Source: Hyaloraphidium curvatum SAG 235-1 (Eukaryota > Fungi > Monoblepharomycota). From it: a DNA stretch of 64,000 bases. The stretch spans positions 620,001 to 684,000 of the forward strand of contig JAIVFI010000002.1 in assembly GCA_025558095.1 (NCBI GenBank), written 5' to 3'. The position numbers were made by a program, and so were the translations under genes. The notes beneath the pieces are model-generated. The model was not told the origin of the DNA, did no database searches, and saw nothing but the letters and a program-made list of their open reading frames with translations. Of the stretch, positions 13,685-34,587 are shown in pieces. Every line of letters begins with the position of its first letter. Within the stretch, counting starts at the first letter, position 1.

Positions 13685-16539
13685 TAGGGTGCCTGGCACC
13701 AAAAAGTTGGGCATGCCCAAAGTGGGCATGCCCATGGGCATGCCCATGGGCACCAATTGCGGATGCGCTGCCCACCGGGTGCCCAACAGCGAGCCCGTCG
13801 AGCGGGCAGGGGAGCCGGCCTAAGGGGTCAGGAGCCAGGGCCAGGACGCGGAATCTATCGCTCACGCCAAGCAAACGTGGATGAATTGATATAGTGATTC
13901 AATGAAATCATTCATCCGTAGAGCGGTCTCCGTTCCTTTTCTGCGAGGGTGTCGCGGTCGGCGGGTGGGGGGTTCGTCGCGAGTTCACCGGCTTTGCGAA
14001 GTCCTGAACATGGAGGACGAACTCGCGCCCAATGACAGCATCAGCGCAGTCAATGAAGGACGCAGCGACGAGGAGGAGAGCGGATCCGAGCGCGGCTCTG
14101 CCTCCTTGCGACCTTCCGTGGAGCGGGGCGATTGGGTGCGCCCGGCACCGGATCTCGACCCGCGATGGGCGGGCTTCCTCGTCAAAAGGAAGGACGGGGT
14201 GAACAGGGGCAAACGCGTCACGGCCAAGTGCACTTTCTGCTCGGAGGAAATGGATGGCCGGCCAGAACGGTTGGAGCAGCACATCGTTTCCAAGTGCAAG
14301 TCCGTGGGGGAAGAACGCGTCGCGTACCTTCGGCGCCTCAATCAGTACGACGAGGAGCAGAAGAAAAAGTCTGCTGCAGCGCCGCAGAGCAAACGCAGGA
14401 AGAGGAACGCGTTTTCTGACGCGTCGTCGACGCCGCCCTCGGCGTGTTCTGCGGCGGGCTCCGCATCTGGCGCTGGAACTCTCCTGGCTCATTTCCATCC
14501 CCCTCTGTCTGCTGCCACTGCAAGTGCGGTGGATTTCGCGATCACCAAAGCTTTTGTGACCGGCAACGTCCCGTTTCGATTCGCGTCGAATCCATATTTG
14601 CTGCAAGCTCTGGGGATCCTGAGCCCGGCGTACCGGCCCCTGACACGCCACTCTATTGGTGGTATCCTGACCCAGATCACTAGGGACGAAGCCCAGAAGT
14701 TGGTCGTGCTTTGTGGGACCGCAAAGTCGTGGACTCTGCAGCTTGACGGATGGGAAGATTCGTCTGGGGCCTCAATCTACGCGATGGTAGCCGTTACACC
14801 GGGCATGGAGCGTTTGTTGGACCTCTGGGATGTCACTCAGGATCGCCACAACGCGGAGCTTTTGCACGAGAAGGTGAACATGTCGTGCCGCTCAATTGGC
14901 CTCAATCTCGCGGCCCCGGGCCCCGTGAACGCGTTCTGCACGGACAGTCCTTCCGTCATGAAGAAGCTTCGTCGGCTGGTGAGCACGGAGCACCCCCACA
15001 TCATCGGCATTCGGTGTGTTCTCCACAACCTCAACCTGCTCGTCAAGGACATTGTGAAGCACGACTGGGCCACCTCCGTGATCAAAAAGAACCTCACTCT
15101 CGTCAATTGGATTCACAAGGCGCCTATGTGGCGCCGCTTGGCCCAGATTTGGGCCGGCAAGCACGATGTTGCACACTCCCTCGCGACGCATACCGACTCG
15201 CGCTGGTACTCTCTCATTACGGTCTGCTTGGGCATTGACGCACATCAGCCGTGGTTCCGTCTTCTCCTCAGCCCGCAACACGCGCACGATGGCCTGGAAC
15301 CCGGTGTACGGCCGACAGACGTTCCAGATCGGGTGCTGGATGTGGTGAAGGACCCGTATCACTTTGCCCACAATGCGGAGCTGATCCAGATCGTGAGGCC
15401 GATTGTGGATGCCCTAGGCCGCCTTGAGCATTCGGACGCGACCCTGGCAGACGTACTGATCGAGTATTCGATGGTTGCTCGGACCTGGCGTGGTGTTAGT
15501 CCCGTTGTGGAGGGTGCCAGGGAAACATTCGCTCTGGCTAAGTTGTCGTTAAATGCCAGAGTCAAGGAGTTTGATCATGCGATCTACTTTGTTGCTCTCC
15601 ACCTTTCCCCTGTTCACCGGAAGTTTTCTGTGACTGGGTGCCAGGTCGACGGCAGGGACAAGAAGCGGTGGCTCGAATGGGAGATTGGCAAGCTGCTGCT
15701 TGCTTGGAAGTTCCGACAGGAGGCCAGCTTGTCGGTCCTTGCCCAGCTGGATGACTATTTCTTCGGGCGCAACATGTTCAGCGGGATCGACGGCCAGGTT
15801 CGGACGGCAAGGGAGTTCTGGGAGACCTGGGGCTTGGGCACTACGGAACTCGTCTTTGTGCGCGAGTTTGCGCTCATGGTGCTTAGCATTGCGCCGCACA
15901 GTGCCGCGACCGAGCGCGTGTTTTCCAGTTTGGGCCTTGCAAAGACAGACTCGCGGAATCGAATGAATTCCGCAACGTTGAAGGAAATAGGGCTGGTCAA
16001 GAGCGCATTGAAGCAGGAGATGAAGACCTTAAAGCCAAGGGTGCAATCTGCGGAGGAAAAGCCCTGGAGAACCCACGGAACCGATGACAACCTTGCCGAC
16101 GTCCTGGATTCCTTGACCTTGGGCTCGGGAGCTCCTATCCGGGCCCTGGACCCGGAAAACGAGCAGCACCGAGATGTTTTCCACGCACTTTGGCCTCGCA
16201 TTGATGCGGAGGAGGAGGAGTTCGAGGTGGGATTTGGGACAACTTCCGTCTTCCGCGCCGCGACAGGGCCCTATGTCTTGGAGAGTTTCCTCGACATTAA
16301 TCAACTGCGCACTGCTGAGGAAGCCCAATTGGCTGCTGCTCAACCGCTGCGGGCTTTTGTTGAGGAGGGGGAGGCACAGATAAGCTTGGAAGCACTCTTA
16401 GCGCAGCATCGTGCACGTTCCTAATAGACTCTCTTCTACAAGTACATGATGGGCATGCCCATATGGTGCCCATGGGCACCGGATCAGGTGATGGGCATGC
16501 CCGTGGGCACGGTATTTTTTGAGCTTGCCAGGCACCCTA
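13685..16539 (+). mobile_element. Full-length hAT DNA transposon
   Basis: Perfect 14-bp TIR TAGGGTGCCTGGCA (13685-13698 / 16526-16539); subterminal GGGCATGCCC palindromes at both ends; GTTGTGAT at 16540-16547 and 13672-13679. Confidence 0.95.
14010..16424 (+). CDS. hAT transposase (BED zinc finger, DUF659-type DDE core, dimerisation domain)
   Basis: CTFC...HIVSKC BED finger; LQLDGWED, TDSPSVM, RCVLHNLNL (CxxH), SRWYS, SAATERVFS; uninterrupted frame (upstream ATG at 13902 also possible). Confidence 0.93.
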   Translation: MEDELAPNDSISAVNEGRSDEEESGSERGSASLRPSVERGDWVRPAPDLDPRWAGFLVKRKDGVNRGKRVTAKCTFCSEEMDGRPERLEQHIVSKCKSVGEERVAYLRRLNQYDEEQKKKSAAAPQSKRRKRNAFSDASSTPPSACSAAGSASGAGTLLAHFHPPLSAATASAVDFAITKAFVTGNVPFRFASNPYLLQALGILSPAYRPLTRHSIGGILTQITRDEAQKLVVLCGTAKSWTLQLDGWEDSSGASIYAMVAVTPGMERLLDLWDVTQDRHNAELLHEKVNMSCRSIGLNLAAPGPVNAFCTDSPSVMKKLRRLVSTEHPHIIGIRCVLHNLNLLVKDIVKHDWATSVIKKNLTLVNWIHKAPMWRRLAQIWAGKHDVAHSLATHTDSRWYSLITVCLGIDAHQPWFRLLLSPQHAHDGLEPGVRPTDVPDRVLDVVKDPYHFAHNAELIQIVRPIVDALGRLEHSDATLADVLIEYSMVARTWRGVSPVVEGARETFALAKLSLNARVKEFDHAIYFVALHLSPVHRKFSVTGCQVDGRDKKRWLEWEIGKLLLAWKFRQEASLSVLAQLDDYFFGRNMFSGIDGQVRTAREFWETWGLGTTELVFVREFALMVLSIAPHSAATERVFSSLGLAKTDSRNRMNSATLKEIGLVKSALKQEMKTLKPRVQSAEEKPWRTHGTDDNLADVLDSLTLGSGAPIRALDPENEQHRDVFHALWPRIDAEEEEFEVGFGTTSVFRAATGPYVLESFLDINQLRTAEEAQLAAAQPLRAFVEEGEAQISLEALLAQHRARS

Positions 16540-16584
16540 GTTGTGATTTGCCCCCTCAGTGCCCACCCCGTGACCCTTTCGCAG

Positions 16585-18147
16585 ATGTTTCGATGCTTCA
16601 TATACCCTTTCAGGGCAAGGACGTTTCTGGTGCCAAGCGGCTTTGGAGTGCTTCTCGTCCTCGCAACAGGACTTTCTTTGTGGTTGAGATGGACTGTATG
16701 GGGCGAAACATCGATCTGTGAGGAGTTGAAACCGTCAGTCGGTGCCATCGTCTACGAGGGATTCTACCGCGAGAGCGAGTCAAAATCTGTGCCTTCATTA
16801 GAACAAGTTAGTTCGCACTGGCGGCTACAATTGTGCCGAGGGGCTCATAACTCGGATCTGCTTCTGGAAGATATTTTTGGGAGCTTCGAGACTAGCTCTC
16901 GATGCGGAAGACGAGGCTTTCTTCGCATTGAACGAAACCGGAACTGTCCATGTGCACCCGGATCGTCTGAGGCCACTACGCCCCCTTTGCACGCCCCATT
17001 GGCATCCGCAGCAATGCGGGACGCGCAGCAATTAGGACCTGATGACATTGATGTTTTACTGGAAGGACCGGAGTTTCTCGGCCTGCGAGGCAAACATTCG
17101 GGAGGCTGTGTGTACCACTTCCCTTTCACCGTTACGATTCCGGGGGAATACCGAGTCCGGATCTTGATAACTCGCTCTGAATGGAGGGCAGTCAATGAGA
17201 GCATGCCCCACTATCCACCGCTCACGCTGGACAACATATCAGGAGAGCGGCTTCTTGTAAATCTCGGGGATCCAACTCGGACGGAGCAGTGTCGACGAAG
17301 CATCGTTGGTGCGGAACTGCCATACTGCTCCACCATTTCGCCGCCAGGTCGGTATGTGCGACGCCTCAATCTTTCCGTGTCCATTTTTGCACCGCCAGAA
17401 CCTCCCTACTTGTTGAGGAAGTTTCCATTTGGAATCGGCCTTCGTTACTTTACCGACATACCAAGAGATCTGGAGTGGCTGCCATATGCATGTCGTTGGA
17501 AGCCTTATTCTTTGCGTGATCTGACAGGGTGCGTTTCAAATCGAACGTGGCAGTTTAGAGGCGACTCGCACATGAGAGCTTTGTTTAATCACTGCGCTCG
17601 ACTTTTCTCTCCGGACACGAGTGACACGGGCAAAGAGACTGAAGCGATCTGCAAGGCATCCATTCCGACATTCCAACTATGTTACCAATATGATCCATTC
17701 GGACGGCACATTCCTGAGCTTTCGTTGAGTGATAACCACACAATCTTCGTCAACTTCGGCCAACATCATGCTGCAGGGTCTCGTACAACAGTTATGGACT
17801 ACGAAAAGGCAGTCAGCAGGTACTTTGAAGGCATAGTAACTGCATCACGGAAGGGAAAAGTGCGTGGCCATGTTGCATGGATGGAGACCATTCCATTCTG
17901 CGTGCGCAACGACCACAGGGTCCACGCACACGGCGATTGGCGCACCAGTCATCGTTTGCAGCTGTACGAGGCGGCAGTCAATAGGGTCATGACTAGTAGT
18001 GAGGCAAAGGCCGTATCTCGGATCTCAACGTCTGACGTGGTGTTTCCGCTGGTCGACGCTTCACCTGACAATGCGCACTATGCTGGAGTGTGGCCCTTGA
18101 TGGATGAGCTGGCACGCCGCGTAGTATTTGTTGCATGTGGATTCTGA
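16585..18147 (+). CDS. NXPE/PC-esterase-like SGNH-fold glycan O-acyltransferase/esterase, type II membrane protein
   Basis: N-terminal TM; Ig-like strand pattern YHFPFTVTIPGEYRVRILI; WLPYAC; FRGDSHMR (GDS); NFGQH; DNAHY (DxxH). Confidence 0.72.
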   Translation: MFRCFIYPFRARTFLVPSGFGVLLVLATGLSLWLRWTVWGETSICEELKPSVGAIVYEGFYRESESKSVPSLEQVSSHWRLQLCRGAHNSDLLLEDIFGSFETSSRCGRRGFLRIERNRNCPCAPGSSEATTPPLHAPLASAAMRDAQQLGPDDIDVLLEGPEFLGLRGKHSGGCVYHFPFTVTIPGEYRVRILITRSEWRAVNESMPHYPPLTLDNISGERLLVNLGDPTRTEQCRRSIVGAELPYCSTISPPGRYVRRLNLSVSIFAPPEPPYLLRKFPFGIGLRYFTDIPRDLEWLPYACRWKPYSLRDLTGCVSNRTWQFRGDSHMRALFNHCARLFSPDTSDTGKETEAICKASIPTFQLCYQYDPFGRHIPELSLSDNHTIFVNFGQHHAAGSRTTVMDYEKAVSRYFEGIVTASRKGKVRGHVAWMETIPFCVRNDHRVHAHGDWRTSHRLQLYEAAVNRVMTSSEAKAVSRISTSDVVFPLVDASPDNAHYAGVWPLMDELARRVVFVACGF

Positions 18148-18159
18148 GCCGGGTAAGCT

Positions 18160-19581
18160 GTCTCCAAGGTGCGGCCCTGTTCCCGTACGTGGTTGAGCTG
18201 GTCCGCTGGACATATACACGACGAGGAGCAGGAGCACGGTCTTGGCGATCAGCACGGCGGACAACCGCTTTCCGAACAGCCGTTTGCGACCAAGACCGAG
18301 ACCCCGGGCGTGAGCACCGTGATTTTGGCCATCACTGCGCTCGAGTGGTTCCGCCTGCGGACGCAGGACTACTTTCCGCAGACCACTTACCCCGAGGCGT
18401 ACGTCAATCTCCGGGATTGCTACGCCGTGAAGGAGCTGGAGAAGCTGCTCAAAGTGCTCGAAGTGGACAAGAAGAACTCCATCGACAGAATCAAAGCGCC
18501 GGGCGTTTTATCTGATACCTACTCGGACTCTGAGTTTCTGGCCGTCGCACAGTACCATCTGACAAAGGGCCGGATCTACCGCAACATCTGGAGGACGTTT
18601 CGGCAATGCCGAGGTGCCAAGGGAGCTTTGGTACCCGGACCTCCCGCTGATCTACCAGACGGAGCGCTTCAAGTCAGAGGTCTACATCCACTACCACAAC
18701 CAGGCGCTCGCGCAGCTCGAGGCCATCAAGGTCTCCCGCGCCAGCACGCTCGCGCCCAAAGACTACGTCGACGCCATGGTCCCGCGGTTCCAGCAGCTTC
18801 AGTCGCAGCACGCGCACTTGGAGAGCCGCGTCGTCACGAGATCTCGGGCGTAAAGGAGCTCGTCAACGAGCGCTTCGACGAGATCAAGGAGCTCCTTCTC
18901 GCGCAGCGTGGCGAGTCAGTGTCGTCGTCCCGCTCCGTGAACGCCCGCTGGGCGAACCCGTCGCCGATTGTAGAGACCCCGACGCGTTCGGCGGCAGATT
19001 CAGCTGGTGCAGAGGGCGAGGCGACGGCGGCATTCTCGTCCGCGGCTGCAGCAGCCGCTGCCGAAGCGGCTGCCGCGCAGAGGCGCCGCAAGGCCGAGGA
19101 TCGCGCTCGGAGGGAGAAGGCGGAGGAGGAAAAGCAACATGCAAAGGCGGAGCTCCTGCGCGAGCACGGGGTCCGTCTTGGATCCCTGGAGCTCGTTTAC
19201 TACGAGCAGGGTCGGCGCTGGGTTCCCCTTTACCCCTTCCCTCGGGTCGTTAACCCGCGGGACATCTGGGACGAGTACACGATCGGGGCCAAGCCGGATC
19301 CCGGGCTCCCTCGCCTAATCTCGATCCGGGAGCTCAACACCATCTTCGACGGATCTTGGACACGCAACATCGCGACACTGAAGCAGCAGAAGAAGCGGAG
19401 GAAGCTGGTGTGCGGCGAGGTGCAGCACCTCCAGAAGGTGAACCATTGGTCCGAGGAACAGGCTCTCCAAAGCCTGCGCAACCGCTTCTATCGCAATGGG
19501 AAGTGGACGGCAATCACCAACGTGTACACTCTCTTGAACGAGGAGCGCAAGGCGCGCGGAGAAGCTGAGGCAGCGGAGTAG
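18160..19581 (+). pseudogene. CryptonF-like tyrosine-recombinase transposon relic with GCR1_C domain; catalytic core deleted
   Basis: N-part ...IKAPGVLSDTYSDSEF...RN; YPDLPLIYQTERFKSEVY in another frame (18614-18853); C-terminal DIWDEYTIG...ISIRELNTIFDGSW...RRKLV matches GCR1_C; frameshifts near 18610 and 18840. Confidence 0.7.
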
Positions 19582-19969
19582 GGAGCGGGCGGGGTGCCGC
19601 GGACGGCTTTGGGCGGGATTGTTGATGTATTCTTCAATTTTGCAATCTTCGTTGATCCCTCAATGTCGAAGCTTGGTCTGGGGAGGCCGAAAACGTCCTT
19701 TTTGTAGTCGTTTTTCGTGCGTTAGCGATCAACCGAGGGGTTGCTCGGGTGACAGTCACACAAACTCGGCCAATTCTCTCACTCGCGACCTCGTGACGGC
19801 CAGCTAGAGTCCTCAACGAGGCTCTCCTGAGCCGTTGCCATCGCCTCGTGGGGCACTGGAACCTTGGGACTCTCCGCGGGGCACCTGCCGGCGGAAAAGT
19901 CACGTCGGGGCCACTCCGCTGAAGGCAGTCGAAGAGGCGCTGGAGTCTTTGGTGGCCCTCGCGAATCCT

Positions 19970-20971
19970 CGGCCGAGGGATGGACGCTGGATTGCGTACG
20001 TCCGCAAGTCGAAGGACGACAACGCGAACAACATTTCGCTGCAAGATCAGGAAGGACTGGTGCGGCGCTGGGCGGCGGACAACAAGAGGGAGATAGTGGC
20101 TGTCTATAACGACGTCCTCAGCGGCACCTACTCGCGTGGCGATGGGAGGAAGCAACGACCCGGACTCGAGGCAGCATTCAAAGGACTCTCTCGAGACCCA
20201 ACGACGTGGGCCTGGTCGTTGCCCGAGTGGATAGGCTCGGCAGAAACGCTGCTTTTATCCTGGCGGACGTGGAGGAGCTGAATCGCATGGGCAAGAACTT
20301 TGCCAGCGTCGAGTTTCAAGGACTCATGCACGGGCCCCTCAATCCAACTTCCAGCATGGCCTACATGTTCCTCGTACTAGGAGCCCTAACGGCGCACACT
20401 GAGCGCTCCTCTGTGAGTGCATCTGCAGGGTGATAGCGATGTCAGCGCAGTCTCTGACCCCGAAGGCACCCACCTCCTCCCTAAGATTGCCGCACGTACT
20501 GCCGACTCGGCGAAGCAGAGATCAACGCGCAACATCGGCCAGTCCAGGTTCTCCCCCTTTGGGACCCGCTTCCGAGCTCGGTTCCCTGGAGGAGAGGTTC
20601 GCGAGGCGGTGGAGTCGGGTGAGCTTGCTGGTCGGGAGTACCACGGAACGAAGCGCGCACCGCTCGAGCTTGTGATCCACGAGCCTGAGGCCGAGCAATC
20701 TGCAATTCCTGCGCCTTACCTGACCAAGCTTGACGGGGAGCAAGACCCTCAGGAAGACTATCACGGGCCGTCGCCGGCATTCTTGGTCGGTGTCCTATGG
20801 GAGCGAGGAAAGGTCATTGATCACCTCGCCAAAGGGGTCCAGCGAGGGTACCTGGATGCATCCTTGCTTGCTCGCAATGTTGCAAAGGCCGTCAAGTACC
20901 TCACGGAGCGGGAGGGGAAGGAGAGGTTCGCGGGGCGCGTGCTGGCGGCGTGGAAGGGGCCGGGCATGTAG
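19970..20971 (+). pseudogene. Serine recombinase (resolvase catalytic domain plus large-recombinase-like extension), one frameshift, one spliceosomal intron
   Basis: AYVRKS (catalytic Ser codon 20009-20011), SLQDQ, D-x-LSG, QRPGL, VVARVDRLGRN, helix E ERSS|IAART, SPFG and LVIHEPEAE; 1-nt frameshift at ~20198; start codon unresolved. Confidence 0.82.
20413..20485 (+). other. Spliceosomal intron (73 nt) in the serine recombinase gene
   Basis: Donor GTGAGT at 20413, branch CTGAC 20454-20458, pyrimidine run, acceptor AAG ending 20485. Removal joins ORFs 20206 and 20417 in phase 0 and restores ER-x-x-I-x-x-R. Confidence 0.72.
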
Positions 20972-21856
20972 GAAGCGTCCAGGGAACGCAATTCGTTCTA
21001 TTCTCCATCTTCAAATACCCATATCCCGGCCCCGTTACCCCGACAAACGCGTTCTGGCAGATGCAAAGAAGCTGATACGCGCCCGTGCGGGTTCTCCCGT
21101 ACGCAACAGGGTTGAGGCCTGTGGGACCTCTGGCAAACAAGAGGGCAATGCTTCTTTTGATTGCCGAATTTTCTCTACGGTCCAATCTTGGCTTGTCGGA
21201 GGAAACGGCCAGGGGTGAGGGAGCAACGTGTCCGAAACAAAGAAAGTGCCCCAGCTGTCGCCAGGAACCTCGGAGCCGCGATCCTTCTAGCCCATGGCAT
21301 TGGCCAGCACCATGAATGTCTGCTACCCCTGATTCCCTGTCCAGTCCACGCCCAGCGGAGAGCGTGGGGGTTGACATCCCGGGCCGCGGCGGGGGCCGGC
21401 AGCGAACCCCGTACAGCGGCTCCAAGGGCGGATCCAGCCACGCAATCCTAGAGAATATGTTCCTCGCGAGATGCATGCGGCGCCGTCTGCCTCCCAAATA
21501 GGCACGCGAAGCCGAGGAAGTGCCTCGGACTAGCCGCCGCCGCGAAGGTCCGCTACCCGGCTCCACAAACAGCTCCAGGAAACAATGGACCCGGCATCCC
21601 CGTAGAAAACGGCGTAGCCAAAGTTGCCGCCCAGCAAGCCGAGCTCGGCGAGGGGCATTCCACGAGGAACACCGCGGGGCCCCTCGAGACCCGGGGTGCC
21701 GCCCCCACACAAGGTCCCCGGCCGGACGCGTCCGCCGCGCCCACCGGCACGTGCGGCGGTACTCGCTGCGACGCTGCGCGGGCCGGCGCGCGGCCGGGCG
21801 GAGCGTGGGATGCGCATGGGGTCGCCGACCTCGCCGGCCTATGAGGTGAACTGCCG

Positions 21857-21899
21857 GGTGACTTTTCGGAGCTATACGGTATAGCTCTGGAAAGTCACC
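21857..21899. repeat. Near-perfect 21-bp inverted repeat (hairpin/dyad)
   Basis: GGTGACTTTTCGGAGCTATAC-G-GTATAGCTCTGGAAAGTCACC; 19/21 Watson-Crick, the other two G:T. Confidence 0.85.
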
Positions 21900-21904
21900 T
21901 CTGC

Positions 21905-22437
21905 TGAAGAGCTTGTTGCGAATCAGCCGGGAGTCAAGGATATGGTTGACCACAAACTCGAACTCGTTGTCGACCTCAATCGGAGGCGGAGGCGGCTGCT
22001 TGCGGTCTGGCGAGGGGTCCGCGTGGTACAGTTCGAGGAGGGAGACATGGAAGGCGGGAAAGATCTTGAGCTGCTTGGGCAGCTTGAGCCTGAAGACAAC
22101 GGGGTTGATTTGGCCTCGATCGGGAACGGGCCAAGGCGTTTGAAATCGAGCTTGTCTGAGGGCCGCGTCGTCTTGATGTTGCGGCGGAGGAGCCACACCT
22201 GGTCGCCGACCTTGAGGTCCGGCGCGGGCAGGCGCTGCTTGTTGGCGTACTTGGAGTTCTTGAGCGAGCTTGAGCTCAAACTGCACTTCCGCAGAGATCT
22301 CGGCAAGCTGGCGGGCGAAGTCCTCGGCTGCGGGTGCCATGGTAGGCTCTCAACGCGGGAGGATGTCGAAACGGGGATGGAAGCCGTAGTTCAGGAAGAA
22401 TGGGGAGGTTCCGGTGGAGGCCGAGCGGGCATTGTTG
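21905..22437 (-). pseudogene. Fragment of Tf1/chromovirus-type Gypsy pol (integrase C-terminus + partial chromodomain)
   Basis: NNARSASTGTSPFFLNYGFHPRFD; KVGDQVWLLRRNIKTTRPSDKLDFKRLGPF; FHVSLLE; EFVVNHILDSR, spread over three frames. Confidence 0.85.
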
Positions 22438-22499: not shown

Positions 22500-25400
22500 T
22501 TGTGGAATGATGGGAGCATTGTTGGGCACACCGGCGCCGAAAAGCGAGCAACATTGCTCACTCCCCTCCGAATCTCCCCGCCTCCTGGCGTCGTGGTGCG
22601 GGTGGGGGCAGCGGGCCGCCCGCGGAAGTCCCTCACCGAAGCCGCACGCCGGGAGCCGGGGCCGATGAGGCCGTCCCCGCCGTCCGGGAGCAGCGGGGGG
22701 TCGACCCAAACAATGGCGACCGCCCCGCTGCCCAACCCTCCCCGGTCCCCGCTGGCGGACGATGCGCCCGGAGACGACGAGGATTTTCACGATGCGCGAT
22801 CGCGGGCCAGCCCGGCCACCGCTGGGGCCGTCGTGGACTTCCCAGCCAACTTCGCTGACAACGGCGGCGCTGTCTGCCCCCTCGGCACATGCGGCTCCCT
22901 GCGCCGATTCCACTCGGCGAGCGCTCTCTGCGGCCACCTCCGGCAGGTGCACTCGACCGCCGAGTGCGACCGCATCAACTTGCACGGACGAGCCGTCCGC
23001 TGCCCGTTCTGCTCGGAGCTCTACATGCGCCGAGGCGCCTACGTCGCCCGCCATGGATGCACGGTCAACGGCCAGACTACCATGCGGACCGGAGCCATCC
23101 CGCTTGGAGCCGCCGCGGAGCCCGCCCCCGCGCCCGAGGCGGCCGCGCCGTCCGTCTGCACCTCGCTGGGAGCCCAAGCCGAGGCCTTGACCGCCGCCCT
23201 CCGCGCCTTCACTTCCGCCCCCCATACGGACCACGAGGCCATCGACAACGCCATGCGCCGCCTGGACGACTACGGCTTCGTTTGGTTCGGCCCACGGCCA
23301 CGCGCCGCCGCTGCCGGTGAAGAACATAACCGCCTCCCCGTGACCGAGATGGACTCGGAGCTCCAGCGCCTCCGCTCCATCGTGCGGCTCGCCGCGGCCG
23401 GCCACGGTGGCAAAGCTCGCCAGCGCGCCATGGGCGGCAAAGTCTTCCCATACTCCGAGGCCAACGAGGAAAGAGTCAGGGCCGTGTTCCCCCACGACCA
23501 CCCCTCGTCGCGCGAAGAGCTGGAGGCCCTTCTGCCTGGCCACGCCTACTCGGACGAATACGCCCTCTCCCTGGTCGGCTGGACACGCACGGAGGTCGCG
23601 CAGTACCTCTGGAAGTACAGTGTCGACCACGAAAGCTCCACCGGGGCGGGGCCCGACACCTGGAACTACCGCCACCTCACCTCCCTCCTCAGCTGCCGCG
23701 GAGACCGCGACCGCAAAGCCTTCCTCCCCGTCGCTGAAGCCGTGATCCAGATCGTCGGAGGCAAGCTCGACCAGGATGGCCTCCGCCACTGGGGCAGCAC
23801 TTCTCGCCTCGTCCCCCTGCTCAAGCCCGACGGAGGGCCCCGACCGATTGGCATCATGCGCATCTTGATGAGGATGGCCAGTGCGCTTGCCAACCGCCTC
23901 TGTCGCGGCCTGCTGGAGCTGATGGTGGGACCGTACGACTGGGGCTCCTTCGTGCGCAACGGGACTGTGGCCGCCGCCCACACGTGTCGCGCGTTCCTTG
24001 GCCACCACCGTAACGGCTCGGTGACCAAGAACGACGTCAAGAACGCCTACCCCACGATCCCGCGCGAGAACCTCTTCCGCATCGCGCAAGGGCTACCGAA
24101 GGCGCTACACGTCGTCCGCACGGAATACCTCGAGTGGGGCGCGGTACACTGGACCGACGTGAACGGCCTTCGCCTCGCGACGTTTGAGCAACGACCGGGC
24201 GGCGCTCAAGGGTGCACGATCATCAGCAACATCTACGACGCCGCCAACAGCACCATCCTGGCCCCCGTGCGCGTCACGTTCGAGGCGGACGGTGTGATCA
24301 TCATCACGTTCAAGGACGACAGCTACACCCTCTGTCCCGAGGCCACCACCGTCTTCCGCGTCAGCCCCGAGCTCAAAAAGGCCTACGCGAGGAACAAGCA
24401 AGAGCTCAGGCTCCCGAAGGGCCTCATCTTCTCGGAGACGGAAGACCCGGCTATCCGCAGTGCCCTCGAAGCAGGTGCACGCGAGCACAACATGCCGCTC
24501 TCGTTCGACGGACTGGTGGTGGCTGGCATCCCCATTGGGACGGAAGCCTTTCAACGCGCCCACTTGGATGCCCGCGTCGACGCCATCGAGCAGCAACTGG
24601 ATACCCTGGTCGATGCCGGCATCCGCATGGTCATGCCTGAGGGGATCCCGACCGTACAGGGCCTCATGCGGACGGTGCGTGTGGCCGTCGGCGCCCCGCA
24701 ATTGGAGTTCCTTGCCGAAGGCCTTCCCCCCTCCGTCACGGGACCGGCCACGATCCGCACCCGCAACCTGGTGTTCAAAGCAGTGATGGCACTGCTTGCT
24801 CAGCCCAAAGCCGGATTGCTGGCCCCCGGCACGCTCACCCGCGAGCTCCGTGAACGCCACGTCGCGTTGCCCTTGCGGCACGGCGGCTTCGGCTTCCGAG
24901 ACCTCCATGCAGCCCGCCACGCCGCCTTCCTCAGCACCTGGCTGCAAACCGCCCACCTTATATGCCGCGTCGTCCCCCTCCACGACGTCGATGTGGATCT
25001 TGACCTGGATGAGTGTTGCGCGGAACTGCTGGAGACCATCCTCTACCTGAAGCAGCCCGCCCTCGGCCTGGGCTCGATCATGGACAAGATCCCCGCCGAC
25101 CGCTCTTTTTTCGCCCTTGCCCAGCGTATGGAGAAGCACTTCAGCTCAGGAGGGAAAGCCTCGGACGCGGCGGCCCGCGACTTCCCACCCCGGAAACTCC
25201 AACACGAGCTGTGCAACATCCTCCAACAGCGCGAATCCGACGCCCTCGTTGCCGCGGCAGGTGCGGCCGGCGACCTGCAGTACCAAACGGCGCTCCAGTC
25301 GGCCCGATCCAACCACGCCACGGCCTTCCTCGGCGCCTCGCCCGGCATCCGAACCCTGCATTGCCACGACACAACGTATCGCGTCGGCTCGGCCCACCTC

Positions 25401-26107
25401 CTTGGCCTACCGCCCCCAGGAACCGCACCAGACGGCACGTGCATGCCGTCGCCCATGCCCAGTCGTGCAGCAGTGGCCGCTGGAGTCGAGAAGGAGCCCT
25501 CCGCCGCCACAACCTGCTGCGCGACGGTCTCAAGACGATCATCGAAAGCCAACCACGCGGCCCGCTCATCGTGGACTCGGAGCCAAACCTCGCCGCGGCA
25601 GGGATCCAGCGCGTCCCGAACGCCCCGCCTGCAACACCGCATGCGTCCGGGCGCGCTGGAGCTTCGCAGCACCCGGAGCAAAACCGTGGCGATCTCCTGG
25701 TCCGCAACGAGCTCACGAACGAAACTATCGTGGTCGACGTCACTGTCACGCATCCCAACGGAACCGCCGAACCCCGATGCCGCTCGGAGCGTCTCTTTGC
25801 CGCCGATCAAGCCGTCAAGGCTAAGGTAGACTTCTACAAGGCCCGGTGGGTATTGCCTTTGAAGGGACCACGCCGCCTCGTACCGTTCGCCATGGAATCG
25901 TACTGTGCATTCCACGATGATGCCGAACGCCTCATGAAGAAGATCGCATACACCAAGTACTCCGATGACGAAGACCTGGACGGACTCCGTGCCACCTTCA
26001 TGTGCAACATGCGTCAACGCCTATCTATTTTATGTATTCGCGGCACTACTGATATCTTTACCGCCTTCCGGAAGCGAGGCTACATGCCACCGGCCGGCGC
26101 GGGATGA
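22500..26107 (+). mobile_element. CRE-like (R2-group, restriction-like endonuclease) non-LTR retrotransposon, frameshifted
   Basis: N-terminal C2H2/C2HC fingers; RT motifs GAGPDTW, LVPLLKPDGGPRPIGI, DVKNAY, GGAQGC, FKDD, GIPIG, LPLRHGGFG. After a frameshift near 25440: HAQSC, RRHN, RGDLLV, VDVTV, KxKxxFY, VPFAMES (RLE domain). Confidence 0.85.
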
Positions 26108-28560: not shown

Positions 28561-31500
28561 CTAACGAACTACTCTCTCCCGAGGATCTCGGAGCTCCGCA
28601 TCGCAAACTTGGAGCTGCGACACCGGGAACCGCAGGCTGAGGAACCTACTGAGGACGATATTTCGAACTTCTTCTCGGCACCTCCTCCGGACTCATTGGG
28701 TCCCCCGAAGCCGGACGGAGTGCCCGCCCCTCCCGTCGAGGCGCTGGAACTCAAGCTCGACCAGACGATCCTCGACGACGAACAAAGGATTCGCTTCCAC
28801 GCCCTCTGCGACAAGTACCGCGAGGTCTTTGCACCGTGGATCGGCAGATTGCGCGGCCACAAGTTCCGAATCGATACTGGGGACAGCAAGCCGATCCATC
28901 AGATTCCTTATCGCACGCCCTTCCGCCTTCGAGCCGAGATGGACAAGGTCATCGACGACCTTCTCGCTCAAGGCGTGGTTGTGCCTTCGCGGAGCCCTTA
29001 CGCCGCGCCCGGCCTCATGGTCCCGAAGGGCCACGGCTCCGGCGAGTGGCGCTTCGTGATCGACTACCGCAAACTCAATGCCATCACCAAGCGCGACGTC
29101 TACCCCATGAAGAATCCGTCGGACACGCTTGCTCTCCTCCGGACAGCACGGGTCTGGAGCATTTGCGACGTGCATTCCGGTTTCTGGCACGTGGAAGTCG
29201 CGGACGAGGACAAGGAGAAGACCGCCTTCACGACGCACCGCGGACTCTACCAATGGGAGCGCATGGCGATGGGTTTCACCAACGCACCAGCGACTTTTGC
29301 CCGCATCATGGACGAAGTCCTCGCCGGCCTCCAATGGTGGTGTTTGGTCGTCTTCATCGACGACATCATCATTTTCTCGGAAACGATCGAGGTCCATTTC
29401 CTCCATCTTGAGCTGTTCTTCCAGCGCCTGGAGCAGGCCGCAATTACGCTCAAGCTTGCCAAATGCAAGTTCTTCCGGCCGCAGGTCAAGTTCCTCGGGC
29501 ACCACGTCACGACGGATGGCCTTTCCGTGGACCCGGAAAAGACCCGCGCGATCGAGGCCTTCCTCCGGCCTGCAACAAAGAAGGACCTTCAGTCCTTCCT
29601 CGGCCTGGCCAATTGTTACCGCCCCTTCGTGGCCGGCTATGCCAAATCGCGCACCCGCTCACGCGCTTGACGCAGGACGGGGCATCGATCACTCGGGATT
29701 GGGACCAGGCCTGCGAACTTGCCTTTGCGACCCTGAAGCAGCGGCTTACGTCGGCCCCCGTGCTGCGACGCCCGGACATGGCCAAGCCGTTCGTGCTCAT
29801 CACCGACGCCAGCGACGTTGGCCTCGGCGCCGTCCTCAGCCAGCGGGACCCCGACGGCCGCGACTACGTCGTCTCCTATGCGAGCCGCGGCTTGCAACCC
29901 GGCGAACGGAAGTGGGACACACGCGAACGCGAGGCCCTCGCAGTCGTGTGGGCCTGCGAGCACTTCCGCCCATACCTCATCGGAGCCGAGTTCGAGGTCA
30001 TCACGGATCACAGCGCACTGAAATGGCTCATGGAGACCACCAAGCCCGGACGCTTGCAGCGCTGGATCCTCTGGCTTTCCGACTTTCGGTTCAAGATCGT
30101 GCACCGGGCGGGCAAGGACAACGCGAACGCGGACTTCCTTTCCCGCTACGTGCCTGCACCCTTGCCGGACGACGACGTGGACATGGAGGACGCGGAGGAC
30201 ATTCTCGACATCCCCCGCTTTCGCCCTTCAACCCTGCCCAAACCCACCCCTTCTGCTTCTGAGGGGGGGAGGGGCGGCATAATGCCGGGGAGGGATCCCG
30301 ATATTCCGCCATTTCTCCGCTCCCCCGCTGCCAGCACCTTCGAAGCATCTCTTGGAGTGCGGAGCACGGGAGGAACGCAGACGGCATTCAATTCCTCGGA
30401 GCCGACCCCGGCTCGATTTGTGGCTGTGACAGGGACCGGGGGGACGTCAGAGTTTGCCGCCGAGACCCTGCCGGGACCATCCAGGCCCGTTCAACCTGAG
30501 CAACCGACGGGCGGATCGCCCGAAGGAGCATCTATCTCAGCACTGACGCGAGCGCAAGGCAAGGCACGGGAACCGTCGGAGTTTGAAGCCGAGGCCCCGG
30601 AGCCGCAAGCGGCTGCGCCGCTCGAGGTGCTTTTGCCCATACCTTGCAGCCGCCGATCCGGAGGACGTTCCGGAGCGGGACAAGGCTTACGTTCACCCTC
30701 TGCTCTATAACGAGCTGCCCGGGTTTCGGGCTGCGCGTGCTATTGATCTTGCTGACGTTAAATCCCGCGACGCCCTCCGCAAGGTGCAAGAGGCGGACGC
30801 AGAGACAAGGTCTCTGATTCACTACGTGCGGGACAAGCAGGTACCGGCGCACAAGGCGCTGAGCAAGTTCCGCGAGAAATATGGGAGCCAGTACTTCCTG
30901 GCCAAGGACGGCGTTCTGTGTCGCCGAGACGAGATCGCGACCGGCACTCGCCGGATCCCGGTGATTCAACTGGTCATTCCGCATTCCCTGCGGGAGTCCT
31001 ACCTTCAGCGAGCCCACGATGACCCGTTGAGCGGGCACGTGGGCCGCCATCGGGCTTACAACAACCTTCGCCGACGGGTGTATTGGGTCGGCATGGCCCA
31101 CGACGTTCGGCGATGGACTCGGGCATACCCATCGTGCATGTCTCGCAAGCTTCCCTCGGTGTCAAACCAGGGACTCCTTCGATCGGTGCCTTTGACGGGC
31201 CCCAACGAGGACATCTATATCGACTACATCGGGCCGATCAAGCCAACGACGCCTCGGGGCAACAAGTATCTCCTGGTATGATCCCTTCACCAAGTGGCTG
31301 GCGGCGTACCCGACGAAGGACCTCTCCGGACCAACGACGGCGTACATGCTTTACACGCGCTGGATCCTGGAGCACGGCCTTCCGAAGCGGATACACCACG
31401 ACAACGCCAACAATCTGGACAGCAGCTACTTGCAGTACCTTTTGCTCAAGCTCGGCATCGACCGCGTTCTCGTGACTGTCGGTCACCCGCAGTCCTCGCT

Positions 31501-33200
31501 CGCCGAAAGGCCGAACCGCTGGATTATGGACGCTCTGTCTGCGGCAGTCTCGAAGAACGCCACCTCTTGGGACGAGGACATCACAGGGGTAATCTTCGCC
31601 TACCGGACGTCGATCCACGCGACGACGGGCGAGACCCCGTTCTTCCTCATGCACGGACGCGACGCCCGGATTCCTCTGGACCTGCTGTATGACAGGACCG
31701 AGATCGAAGAGCCCGTGCACCTGCGCAACCGGGACGAGGAGAAGAACAGGTCGAAGGAGGACATCCTTCACACCTACGTCGTCAAGCTCGTTGCGCAGCT
31801 GCGGAGTGCCTACGATCTCGTGGCCCAGAAAATGGCCGAGGCAGCCGAGACGCGGAACGCCAGGGAAAACCAGCGCCGCCTCCCTGTGACTTTCCAACCG
31901 GGCGATCTCATCATGGTTTGGAACCCTACGGACAACGGCGGGAAGTTCATCTCACGCTTCATGGGGCCGTACCGCATCCTTGAGCAAGGGCGAACGGAGC
32001 TGACGTGGCGGCTTCAGCACGCCAAGGACCTGGACCACTATATCACAGTGCACGTGGACCGGATGCAACGCTTCAAGCCTTGGGACGCGGCCTCGTTAAA
32101 TGCCCGCTCATGGAACGCTCGTGTTCGGGACCTCACCGCCCAACAGGAGCTTGATCTTGCGGAGCCTTAACACAAGCTCGAGGAAGAGTACGAGTACGAG
32201 AACGTGCTCGCCGACCCCGAGAAGGAGGACCCCGTCGAGGAAGTCCTCGGCCACGAAGGACGGGGATAGGATTTGGTCTTCTTTGTCAAATGGCAAGGCT
32301 TCGCCCGCCCGACTAGGGAACCTTTCCGATCCCTCGCGGACGGGGCTGCGGACAGCATCCGCGGCTACGCTGCCCGCGTCGGGCTCAAACTGCCCGCCCT
32401 CCCGGACAAACATCGGAATCGGCGCCGCCGGACCTGATTCGTTCCCATTCAATCTGGTCAAAGCACACTCTGAGAGGTTCTCTATCTTCACCAAGGACAT
32501 CTACCCCTACGGAATATGGTTCGGCGGATCCCAAAACCTCACATCCAACTCCACCAACGACATGATTTCCACGGAGCAACCGGGATGTTTCTTCTTCATA
32601 TGGCACCAGATGAAACTGTCGGAGAGCCCCTTGAGACCTGCCCCCCGGTACATCTTCGGGCACTTCCCCTGCGCAAGGCAGAAGGGCAGAAGGTGTAGAC
32701 ATCAGGAGGCTGGTCTCCCAGCGACCCTAGCACCAATCCGATCACCGCGCCGCCCGATACCACGGTGTGCCGAAGCACCACGTGGGGATGCTTCGCGAGG
32801 GCCATGCTGACACAGCGGTACCACGTTGGACCGAAACAATCACTCTGGAACGGCATCTGGATCAGCACGCGGACCGACTCAACCTCGAAAGCTCACCGAG
32901 GACCTCGGCCTTGAGAACGTCACCCGACCAAGTCGCGAGTTCTCGCGACGGCGGCGTGCAGCCGACTGCCGCCAGGAGCCTCACTGTCTCCTCGGCAACG
33001 AGCCGCGCCCTCTCTGTGTCTTCCCCCGCGGGTTCGTCGCCATCCTCCTCCTCCTCCTCGGACGACTCGGCGTCGGGCGCTGCCACCGCCTGCTGGACGG
33101 CGCCCGGGTCGAAGCCATCCACCTCTTGGTTGCCTTCGAGCGGCCACCCCATGTGTGGGTCTCCCAAAAGGGCGCTTCCGAGGGCCAAGTCAAGGGAGAA
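28561..33200 (+). mobile_element. Degenerate Gypsy element (family B; RT-RNaseH-integrase-chromodomain), 5'-truncated, continues at 38676-38906
   Basis: ORFs 28609, 29463, 30583 and 31346 are frameshifted pieces closely similar to pol 55648-60783 (VVFIDDIIIFS, TDASDVGLG, AHDDPLSGHVG, HHDNANN). Confidence 0.92.
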
Positions 33201-33393
33201 TGTAACGCGCCGGCGTCGGGGCAAGGGGGACGGTGGTCCCCGGCGAGAGACTCGGCGCAGTGCTGTGTAGTGACTCCTCAACGTCGTCAACACAGGTCTT
33301 TACGGGTCCCCCGCGCCCCGTCCTGACAGTTTGACGACGTTCCAACCCTGAATCCACGTTTCCCGTTCCCCGTGACCTCGCCCTTGGTGCAGC

Positions 33394-34587
33394 ATGGCTG
33401 GCGCCGACGCTCTCCGCGATCTCCTCTCCGCGACCCCGGACCCCCAGACTCCCGTCGAAGTCCTTATCGAGCGCGAAAGGGTTTTCCTTGATACCCTCGA
33501 GCCGCAGGAGCGTGCTGCTTTCGTCAGCTTCTTGGACGCCCTCGGCGACGCTCAGCCCGAGTTCATCGCGCTCCCGATCCGTGCCCAAGTCGCCACCTAC
33601 CGCGCTTCCCAAGCAACCCACATCGCGCAGCACGCTCCTCTGTCTGCTCCGATTTCGGTGTCCGCCGCTGCGCTCACGGACGCGTTTGTCGGCTCTGTCG
33701 CGCGCATGGGGTTCCTGCCCCAGCACGCCGCTGCTGCCCCAACCGCGAAACCGATCAACGTGCCTACCCCGGACAAGTTCGACGGGACCGATCACGCACG
33801 GACCCGTTACTTCATGATGCAGGTCGACAACGCGCTCGAGCTCAAGCCGGAGCTTGCCTCGGACGCCCAAAAGATCGCGTTCTTCAGTCTGCTTCTCAAG
33901 GGCGATGCGCTCCGCTGGTTTGCTGCCCAGCAGAGCGGCTCCGGGACGATCGCGCCCTCGTGTTCCTCACTTCGCGAGGAGTTTCTCTCTACCTTTCAGA
34001 TGCCACTTCGACACACTTTCGCCGTCAATGCGCTCCATGCACTCGTCCAGAAGCCCGGGCATCTGGCCGAATACGCAGTCGAATTTGAAAGCCTGAAGCC
34101 GGATGTCGAGGGCTACAGTGATGCCACGTTCATGGATATGTTCCTGGCTGGCCTCTCCGCGGAGATCGTGAACCAGATGGGCCAGCATTCGAAGCCCAGT
34201 ACGTACCAGGAAGCGAAGAAGATCGCATTTGCTGCTCAAGTTCGCCTCTCCGAGCAGCAAGCTGCGCTGCGCAAAGCTCGGAGCCGCGACCGGCCCACCT
34301 CTGGGTATCCCTACCCCGGAGCGATGCAGTCGGTGCCCATCGGATCGCATGTCTCTCCGGCAGCTCCTTCCGCAAGTGCTTCCGGCCCCGTGCCGATGGT
34401 GCTGGGTTCCGCGTCTGCATCTGGCCAGCCGGGCGGGGCTTCAGGCTCGGCGTCCTCAGGGTCGCGCGCCAAGCTGACGCCGGAGGAGCGCCAGCGCCGC
34501 CTTCGCGAGGGGCTCTGCATTTACTGTGGTCAGCCCGGTCAAGTCAAGGCCTTTCGCCCCGCCAAGTCTGCATCGTCGTCTTTTTGA
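33394..34587 (+). CDS. gag: Gag (retrotransposon capsid; degenerate zinc knuckle)
   Basis: PDKFDG...LLKGDALRWF capsid motifs; PVPMVLG; CIYCGQPGQ lacks the final H/C of the knuckle. Confidence 0.9.
   Translation: MAGADALRDLLSATPDPQTPVEVLIERERVFLDTLEPQERAAFVSFLDALGDAQPEFIALPIRAQVATYRASQATHIAQHAPLSAPISVSAAALTDAFVGSVARMGFLPQHAAAAPTAKPINVPTPDKFDGTDHARTRYFMMQVDNALELKPELASDAQKIAFFSLLLKGDALRWFAAQQSGSGTIAPSCSSLREEFLSTFQMPLRHTFAVNALHALVQKPGHLAEYAVEFESLKPDVEGYSDATFMDMFLAGLSAEIVNQMGQHSKPSTYQEAKKIAFAAQVRLSEQQAALRKARSRDRPTSGYPYPGAMQSVPIGSHVSPAAPSASASGPVPMVLGSASASGQPGGASGSASSGSRAKLTPEERQRRLREGLCIYCGQPGQVKAFRPAKSASSSF

Follow-up and report, generated by a model that had tools for sequence, protein, structure and literature searches.

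A decayed copy of an intron-bearing serine recombinase gene family in mobile DNA of the fungus Hyaloraphidium curvatum

The stretch of the Hyaloraphidium curvatum genome considered here (the window, 64,000 nucleotides (nt) long and corresponding to C2:620001-684000 of the 31.9-Mb, 55-contig assembly that was searched) carries on its forward strand the remains of a gene for a serine recombinase (SR), which spans window positions 19917-20971 and comprises two exons flanking one intron. The gene belongs to a larger block, 18221-21904, which is a dead, multiply damaged internal fragment of a low-copy repeat, termed family 1 below; the window copy is only a fossil and serves as a pointer to the SR family. 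The features of this block are listed below by window position and strand, with the basis of each assignment in brackets.

18221-19581, + strand: remnant of a Crypton-type tyrosine recombinase gene, with the 5' part missing, the core deleted and the GCR1_C domain kept (homology to the copy on contig C22)
19582-19916, + strand: spacer and 5' region of the SR gene, ending at a 65-base-pair (bp) deletion at 19916|19917 (four-copy alignment)
19917-20412, + strand: SR exon 1, catalytic domain, without the first 12 codons (PF00239 matches, paralog alignment, open reading frames (ORFs))
20413-20485, + strand: spliceosomal intron, 73 nt, phase 0, GTGAGT..CTGAC..AAG, splitting helix E after ER-x-x (paralogs, run contig, gene models)
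20486-20971, + strand: SR exon 2, end of helix E and a C-terminal domain of ~150 residues, SPFGTRF...LVIHEPE...HR... (ORF; domain conserved in 22 sequences)
20972-21904, + strand: non-coding 3' tail of the element (no codon periodicity, 1-2-nt indels among copies, no Pfam match on its ORFs)
21857-21899, no strand: 43-bp near-perfect palindrome with 21-nt arms and 1 nt between them (repeat search; 90% complementarity in the window and C22; present in all copies)

The window gene is identified with high confidence as a serine recombinase with a resolvase-type catalytic domain. The exons were searched separately, and the public spliced models P0001 and P0006 served as protein queries. The profile PF00239 matches both halves of exon 1, with profile positions 2-61 aligned to window 19835-20278 (E 2.5e-6, 28.1 bits) and positions 67-125 aligned to 20206-20412 (E 7e-5, 23.4 bits). 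Both pieces exceed the gathering cut-off of 23.3 bits, and the intact exon 1 of the C22 paralog reaches 54.9 bits (E 1.3e-14). A preliminary description, made from the sequence alone, had reported a full set of resolvase motifs and had staked the identification on a PF00239 match, which was obtained; the motifs YVRKS (Ser codon 20009-20011), SG, RPGL, DRLGR and ER..|..RT are all readable in the window gene. The serine of Y-x-R-x-S, the D-R-L-x-R motif and the E-R...R-T motif are found in the window and in all paralogs and are nearly invariant in a 13-sequence alignment, and the catalytic serine lies ~38 residues from the protein start. Exon 2 consists of 161 codons and ends in a stop codon at 20969-20971.

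The interval 20413-20485 is a real spliceosomal intron, as seen from four independent lines: the lengths among paralogs, a run contig, public gene models and a second SR family. Its removal joins ...TERSS to IAARTADS... and restores the helix E motif E-R-x-x-I-x-x-R-T, as the preliminary description had proposed for a 73-nt intron at this place. Depending on the copy, the interval measures 73, 74 or 75 nt, yet the exons on either side stay in frame, so that its length varies regardless of frame. In the public run X1, which is guessed to be RNA, a 257-nt contig skips exactly the corresponding 74 nt of the C22 copy (L004 1997->2072) with GT..AG ends and with 101 nt on the shorter side of the junction, which provides the C22 counterpart of the junction that had been sought at 20412/20486. 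The X1 depth over the intron bin is wholly explained by this junction contig, so no X1 contig covers the intron; because every genomic copy contains the interval, the joined form does not stem from a DNA copy. The family-1 SR gene is thus transcribed and spliced, on the strength of run X1 and its guessed RNA origin. The same 65-nt skip, over the stretch deleted at 19916|19917 in the window, appears in a run contig.

The splice junction is shared by the public gene models P0001, P0003 and P0004, and the second SR family of this genome (family 2) carries a 49-nt intron at the same codon (FEREQ|VRERT vs TERSS|IAART). Introns at other positions are present in the homologs of Chytridium lagenaria, Obelidium mucronatum and Gonapodya, and these differing positions indicate that introns have continued to be gained in the SR gene family. 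Separately, one run contig lacks a 75-nt stretch bounded by CT..AC (L004:2170-2246), within SR exon 2. This skip suggests a GT..AG intron on the opposite strand, and hence a spliced antisense transcript, with thin support (28 nt on one side).

Family 1 is represented in the genome by four full copies and one partial copy that are ~92% identical: the window copy, C22:421636-422692, the head-to-head pair C9a and C9b, and C14, a 3' fragment that begins within exon 2. Homology between the window and C22 spans 18221-21904, and C22 continues beyond both ends; relative to C22, the window homology has a 1,128-bp gap at 18586|18587. A private 1-bp deletion at 20204|20205, where three paralogs have an extra T, shifts the reading frame of the window gene. 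A private 65-bp deletion at 19916|19917, flanked by a 4-nt microhomology, removed the ATG, which is present within the 65 bp in C22, C9a and C9b; those copies begin MAAREKPALK.... Because this deletion took the gene start, position 19970, from which the gene had been described, falls within exon 1 rather than at its beginning. The frameshift that had been placed near 20198 is thus real, at 20204|20205, but it is not the one lesion of this copy, which has also lost its ATG, both of its ends and 1,128 bp. The window copy can presumably no longer make the protein.

The only intact SR gene of family 1 is that of C22, which answers the search for intact copies and consists of a 173-codon exon 1, a 74-nt intron and a 161-codon exon 2 (334 codons). 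C9a has insertions of 14 bp and 1 bp, and C9b has a 1-bp deletion. These two copies form a palindromic structure of ~4.6 kb (L006/L007, C9:336650-341290) with their 3' ends outward and an asymmetric inner junction (window equivalents 19775 and 19742), and no target duplication is found in the flanks read around the pair. The ratio of nonsynonymous to synonymous substitution (dN/dS) is 0.15-0.23 in all six family-1 pairs, with a synonymous divergence (dS) of 0.05-0.21, and variable sites at codon positions 1/2/3 number 7/9/33 in exon 1 and 8/11/28 in exon 2. The low dN/dS and the third-position bias indicate that most of the divergence among the copies arose while the protein was functional, a substitution pattern that shows the signature of purifying selection on the family-1 SR.

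All members share a C-terminal region of ~150 residues with an S-P-x-G-T-x-F motif (P and G invariant), an L-x-L-V-x-H-x-x-E strand-helix and a basic H-R-K motif. The exon 2 region has no match to PF07508 or to any other Pfam or NCBIfam profile; the PF07508 match anticipated in the preliminary description was obtained neither on the window pieces nor on those of C22. The AlphaFold (AF2) model of the whole P0006 protein has a predicted local distance difference test (pLDDT) score of 81 and a long helix at residues 162-195, which is helix E, and the model of the family-1 exon 2 has a pLDDT of 86.6 and a predicted template-modelling (pTM) score of 0.78. A Foldseek search with the whole P0006 model gives large serine recombinases as the best matches over ~285 columns, including Bxb1 (9iu2, E 9e-8; 9dxd, E 3e-7), PhiC31 and 4bqq, and also matches the catalytic domains of TP901-1, gamma-delta, Sin and Gin with template-modelling (TM) scores of up to 0.73 by target. 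In an exhaustive VIA-align search with the C-terminal domain, the top six matches are all recombinase domains (9iu2, 9teh, 9dxd, 9if5, 4kis and 4bqq; Z 4.4-5.3), which include those of the Bxb1, PhiC31 and LI integrases and occupy the equivalent place in each chain; the seventh match has a Z of 3.1. This bears out the earlier remark that SPFG...LVIHEPEAE is reminiscent of how the recombinase domain begins in large serine recombinases. The modelled C-terminal domain thus resembles, modestly but specifically (Z ~5), the recombinase domain, which is the first DNA-binding domain of large serine recombinases. Neither a zinc ribbon nor a coiled coil is present in the models, and the protein ends ~150 residues past helix E with a small beta sheet and helices. 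The predicted SR therefore resembles a shortened large serine recombinase composed of a catalytic domain, helix E and a recombinase-like domain. Apart from these proteins, P0093, P0159, P0077, P0083, P0096 and P0148 (Boothiomyces, Globomyces and environmental contigs) contain two tandem SR C-terminal domains and no catalytic domain, and may represent a domesticated DNA-binding protein of Rhizophydiales.

The gene upstream of the SR in family 1 is best read in C22. The GCR1_C domain (PF12550, window ~19258-19482) is matched at E 1.2e-7 in the window and E 8.2e-10 in C22, where the gene also has Crypton-like recombinase motifs by eye, a weak NDC10_II match (E 0.12) and a GT..AG intron of its own. 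The C22 recombinase piece is ~30% identical to other Crypton-like genes of the genome (E 1e-25), and by its GCR1_C domain, tyrosine recombinase motifs and intron, the predicted make-up of the upstream gene is that of a fungal Crypton. In the window, the 1,128-bp deletion at 18586|18587 took the catalytic core of this gene, the remnant of which is included in the ORF 18169-19581. The SR module lies directly 3' of the Crypton-type gene in two of the five copies, namely the window and C22.

The 3' end of family 1 is well defined. C22, C9a, C9b and C14 stop at the identical base, ...AAAACACACAT, and continue into four unrelated flanks; this common end with different flanks is good evidence that the element truly terminates here, and does so at four loci. 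The full tail is ~1 kb long, and that of the window is truncated ~110 bp short of the true 3' end. The 43-bp palindrome within the tail is a candidate recombinase binding or crossover site. Comparison of the C22 5' region with the 3' end yields chance-level 7-10-mers and no terminal direct or inverted repeats in this one full-length copy. The left flank of the window copy (17700-18220) is unique in the genome, its right flank is a truncated gypsy-like repeat, and no empty site can be reconstructed from the two. The flank alignment that had been proposed to define element ends and empty sites accordingly delivered the 3' end, and neither the 5' end nor an empty site of family 1.

Several observations concern other Crypton-like sequences and the surroundings of C22. 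At C2:564006-564545 (L015/L016), a 284-bp piece that is 86-91% identical to the Crypton gene end and ~80 bp beyond it is duplicated in tandem, and it sits between Crypton-like copies at C2:558383 and C2:569353. The fragment ends at window ~19660, ~80 bp beyond the stop codon of the tyrosine recombinase gene; this suggests a boundary there, and the Crypton and the SR module may once have been separate. Other Crypton-like genes, with ORFs of 737-753 residues, are located at C21:157452-169512, C49:8525-15157 and C22:612956-614164; their spacing of ~5.5-6 kb suggests tandem arrays, and no serine recombinase is found near any of these further Crypton-like families. The segment L014:1-198 (C22:417220-417417), which immediately precedes the C22 element, belongs to a repeat with more than 40 genome copies at 91-94% identity and adjoins an ORF similar to reverse transcriptase (RT).

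The family-2 SR (P0006/P0154, 332 residues) is 37-39% identical to that of family 1 and is present in four or five copies with intact genes, at C4:368717-375518, C34:538374-545424, C46:166834-173885 and C9:537593-544644 (L049-L055, L065-L072). Identity among three of the copies is ~99%; the C9 copy is more diverged, with 93-95% in the stretches compared. The element is longer than 7 kb, and its 3' end, ...AATCAAAAACAAAAATCGC, is also present at C39:485040. The SR lies 3' of a large gene without a Pfam match, which language-model features tie to transposases of the Mutator-like element (MULE)/DUF6729 type with a score of 0.93-0.94, to be taken as a lead only. A perfect 32-bp palindrome with 15-nt arms and a central AG is located between the large gene and the SR (L050 ~900-940, C34 ~542270-542310) and is partly duplicated in the C4 copy; it represents a candidate crossover site. 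A gene model of C. lagenaria fuses a weak DUF6729 match with an SR. By BLASTP, the family-2 upstream gene has no similarity to the N-terminus of the C. lagenaria protein P0015, and its match to the C. lagenaria protein P0009 is a weak one in a CxxC motif (E 0.012).

Obelidium mucronatum contains two copies of a ~6.8-kb unit in which a 1,121-residue orphan gene is followed by an SR (L074:4693-11452, L075:4722-11453). One copy interrupts a 1.87-kb tandem array, the neighbouring units of which supply the empty site, and target duplications of 8 bp (AAATTCTC and AAAATTTC) border the two copies, neither of which has terminal inverted repeats. Serine recombinases exchange strands with a 2-bp stagger and leave no duplication of this 8-bp type, so the Obelidium insertion was probably made by another enzyme. 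On the Gonapodya contig, no Crypton is found upstream of the SR. An ORF at the contig end of Gonapodya sp. JEL0774 (L080:8315-8890, - strand), convergent with the SR gene, shows motifs like the Arg box of tyrosine recombinases and a Phage_integrase match below threshold (E 0.045), and the contig may be a second neighbourhood of an SR and a tyrosine recombinase.

An exhaustive HMMER search with P0001 returns 16 proteins at E<1e-10. The sources traced, with two matches (P0018 and P0019) left out of the tracing, are H. curvatum (both families), C. lagenaria, Quaeritorhiza haematococci, O. mucronatum, Amoeboaphelidium occidentale and environmental contigs; Rhizoclosmatium (E 4e-7) and Gonapodya (E 3e-6) give weaker matches. 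The best bacterial-looking matches start at E ~1e-11 with ~36% identity. A quick maximum-likelihood tree separates 18 eukaryotic or environmental sequences from 12 bacterial-type sequences with 100% support in the Shimodaira-Hasegawa-like approximate likelihood ratio test (SH-aLRT), with internal branches that are poorly resolved. As far as these searches reach, the SR clade occurs only in zoosporic fungi and on environmental contigs, and at least seven zoosporic-fungal genera have kept the gene. No family matches are found among the neighbours of the metagenomic SR homologs. The SR proteins are already in public databases, labelled only as resolvase-domain proteins. A full-text literature search found no paper joining serine recombinases with chytrids and no use of the phrase "eukaryotic serine recombinase", and no description of the zoosporic-fungal SR family was found in the literature searched. 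IS607-type elements are treated as the eukaryotic case by Bao and Jurka (2013, PMC3627910) and likewise by a 2026 review (PMC13565253).

Taken together, these observations point to a dead family-1 copy of a spliced, selected SR that acts as an accessory site-specific recombinase, a reading that as a whole has a slightly better than even standing. The SR would recombine element DNA conservatively and site-specifically, with the conserved palindrome as the probable site, and its role would most likely be to resolve cointegrates, tandem arrays or multimeric circles, or to excise circles. Insertion would be left to a partner enzyme; in family 1 this would be the tyrosine recombinase, and in the related elements a large protein resembling a transposase. 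The accessory role is favoured because of the 8-bp target duplications in Obelidium and the position of the SR behind a large transposase-like gene in family 2; as a separate claim, this division of labour, in which the SR resolves or excises and the partner inserts, is judged to be evenly balanced. The eukaryote-adapted serine-recombinase mobile element proposed in the preliminary description therefore holds in part: a eukaryotic, intron-bearing SR in repeated mobile DNA is present, but the SR itself is not shown to be the mobility enzyme, given its place 3' of a Crypton-type or transposase-like gene and the Obelidium duplications. A more far-reaching version, in which family 1 is a dual-recombinase eukaryotic transposon whose Crypton tyrosine recombinase inserts a circle while the SR resolves or excises arrays at the palindrome, and which together with the chytrid transposase-plus-SR elements defines a new mobile-element class across zoosporic fungi that has a eukaryote-adapted serine recombinase at its base, is tentative and rather doubtful.

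A number of points weigh against the accessory reading. The 5' end of family 1 was not found, so the Crypton gene and the SR may be mere neighbours instead of one mobile unit; three of the five copies (C9a, C9b and C14) have the SR module without the Crypton part, and no circle, empty site, deletion or inversion is seen for family 1. Obelidium and family-2 upstream genes show no similarity by BLASTP, so the notion of a transposase partner rests on weak leads. The likeness of the C-terminal domain to the recombinase domain is modest, as the Z of ~5 is accompanied by no PF07508 match, by nothing under E 0.2 in Foldseek with the C-terminal domain alone, and by spurious ankyrin matches only when the domain profile is compared with Protein Data Bank (PDB) sequences. 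The main caveat on splicing is that run X1 is only guessed to be RNA.

The main rival to the accessory role takes the ~2.4-kb SR module for a self-sufficient serine-recombinase transposon or integrative element that passes through a circular intermediate, as in Tn4451/Tn5397 or IS607, and that landed beside a Crypton in a composite that was later duplicated. The three copies without the Crypton part fit such a module, as do the identical full 3' ends with their different flanks, the boundary suggested by the C2:564k fragment ~80 bp past the tyrosine recombinase stop (~19660), and the closeness of the protein to integrase-type (large) serine recombinases. However, no copy has a defined 5' end, since C9a and C9b are joined at different internal points and C14 starts within exon 2; the Obelidium relatives have a large second gene and duplicate 8 bp of their target; and the protein is without the two parts on which integrases rely to pair sites and control direction, the zinc ribbon and the coiled coil. 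An autonomous SR module is accordingly considered unlikely. It is decidedly improbable that the SR is a passenger or decaying relic without present function, that is, old horizontally acquired DNA trapped in transposons. The damage to three of the four family-1 SR genes, the low copy number and the placement of the window copy in a nest of dead elements would suit a relic, but the dN/dS of 0.15-0.23 across copies would not, nor would one intact family-1 gene that is transcribed and spliced (given the guessed RNA run), the four or five family-2 copies (~99% identical) with intact genes, or the retention of the gene in at least seven zoosporic-fungal genera.

Bacterial contamination, or a very recent bacterial transfer in which the 73 nt are an unrelated insertion, has a vanishingly small probability. 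Although the domain family is overwhelmingly prokaryotic and the region is GC-rich, the copy lies on a 1.3-Mb contig amid hAT, Ty3/gypsy and RT sequences, the best bacterial matches reach only E ~1e-11 and ~36% identity, the GT..AG interval varies in length regardless of frame and is removed in a run contig, and the upstream gene is intron-bearing too. The genomic context, the intron, the paralogs and the homologs in fungi all led to the rejection of contamination, in agreement with the preliminary description, which had set aside a bacterial origin and had named near-identical bacterial genes as the finding that would speak for one; the bacterial matches are far from near-identical. An identity as an IS607/Fanzor-type recombinase, which had likewise been doubted, was also rejected: the DNA-binding domain is C-terminal, the match to the IS607-type profile NF033518 reaches only 14.7-16.6 bits where the cut-off is 110, and the non-coding 3' tail contains no TnpB or Fanzor.

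In comparison with known systems, the H. curvatum SR has the same order of catalytic domain, long helix E and mixed alpha/beta domain as the large serine recombinases (Bxb1, PhiC31, TP901-1 and LI integrase; TnpX/TndX of Tn4451/Tn5397), and the mixed domain opens with a P-x-G-aromatic motif in both. Large serine recombinases have a zinc-ribbon domain with an embedded coiled coil and are ~450-700 residues long, whereas the H. curvatum SR has only ~334 residues, no zinc ribbon or coiled coil and no PF07508; it is also nuclear, has a spliceosomal intron and is found not in a phage but next to a tyrosine recombinase or transposase-like gene. IS607-type elements are alike in placing a serine recombinase in eukaryotic mobile DNA, and family 1 shows no terminal inverted repeats; they differ in their N-terminal MerR-like helix-turn-helix (HTH) and their TnpB/Fanzor, where the H. 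curvatum SR has a C-terminal DNA-binding domain and a non-coding tail. The Tn3 family (transposase, TnpR and res) offers a likeness in the SR gene beside a different, larger mobility gene, the palindrome nearby and the target duplications of the relatives. It differs in that the family-1 partner is a tyrosine recombinase and not a DDE transposase, and in that the C-terminal domain is not a small HTH; the likeness is one of layout only, the resolvase of Tn3 elements acting at res to resolve cointegrates. The upstream gene resembles Cryptons in its GCR1_C domain (E 8e-10), Crypton-like motifs and introns, and other Crypton-like families of the genome are in tandem arrays. Cryptons end on both sides in short direct repeats and do not duplicate their target, and no Crypton carrying a serine recombinase was found reported in the literature searched.

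Serine recombinases are central to the rearrangement of bacterial and phage DNA and serve as core tools in genome engineering, and in eukaryotic mobile DNA only those of the IS607 type are on record in the literature searched. The SR family has been in fungal nuclei long enough to gain introns and extends the enzyme repertoire of eukaryotic transposons. Built like a minimal integrase from a catalytic domain and one DNA-binding domain, its members offer compact recombinases that are already adapted to the eukaryotic nucleus, and they raise the question of whether eukaryotic transposons have a resolvase step, as in Tn3.

The surroundings of the window copy are a nest of dead elements on the 1.3-Mb contig, and the mobile-element nest of the preliminary description is borne out by neighbouring hAT and gypsy ORFs as well as by the repeat copies. 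Upstream on the + strand are a hAT-like transposase ORF of 840 residues at 13902-16421 (DUF659, E 4.6e-12; hAT dimerisation domain, E 5e-4) and, directly before the element fragment, a 542-residue ORF at 16519-18144 that has no Pfam match. Downstream, a Tf2/Ty3-type integrase SH3 fragment at 21905-22340 (- strand) belongs to a repeat of at least seven copies; it is followed on the + strand by a 1,109-residue ORF with a weak RVT_1 match at 22500-25826 and by Ty3/gypsy RNase H and gag ORFs at 29463-34584.

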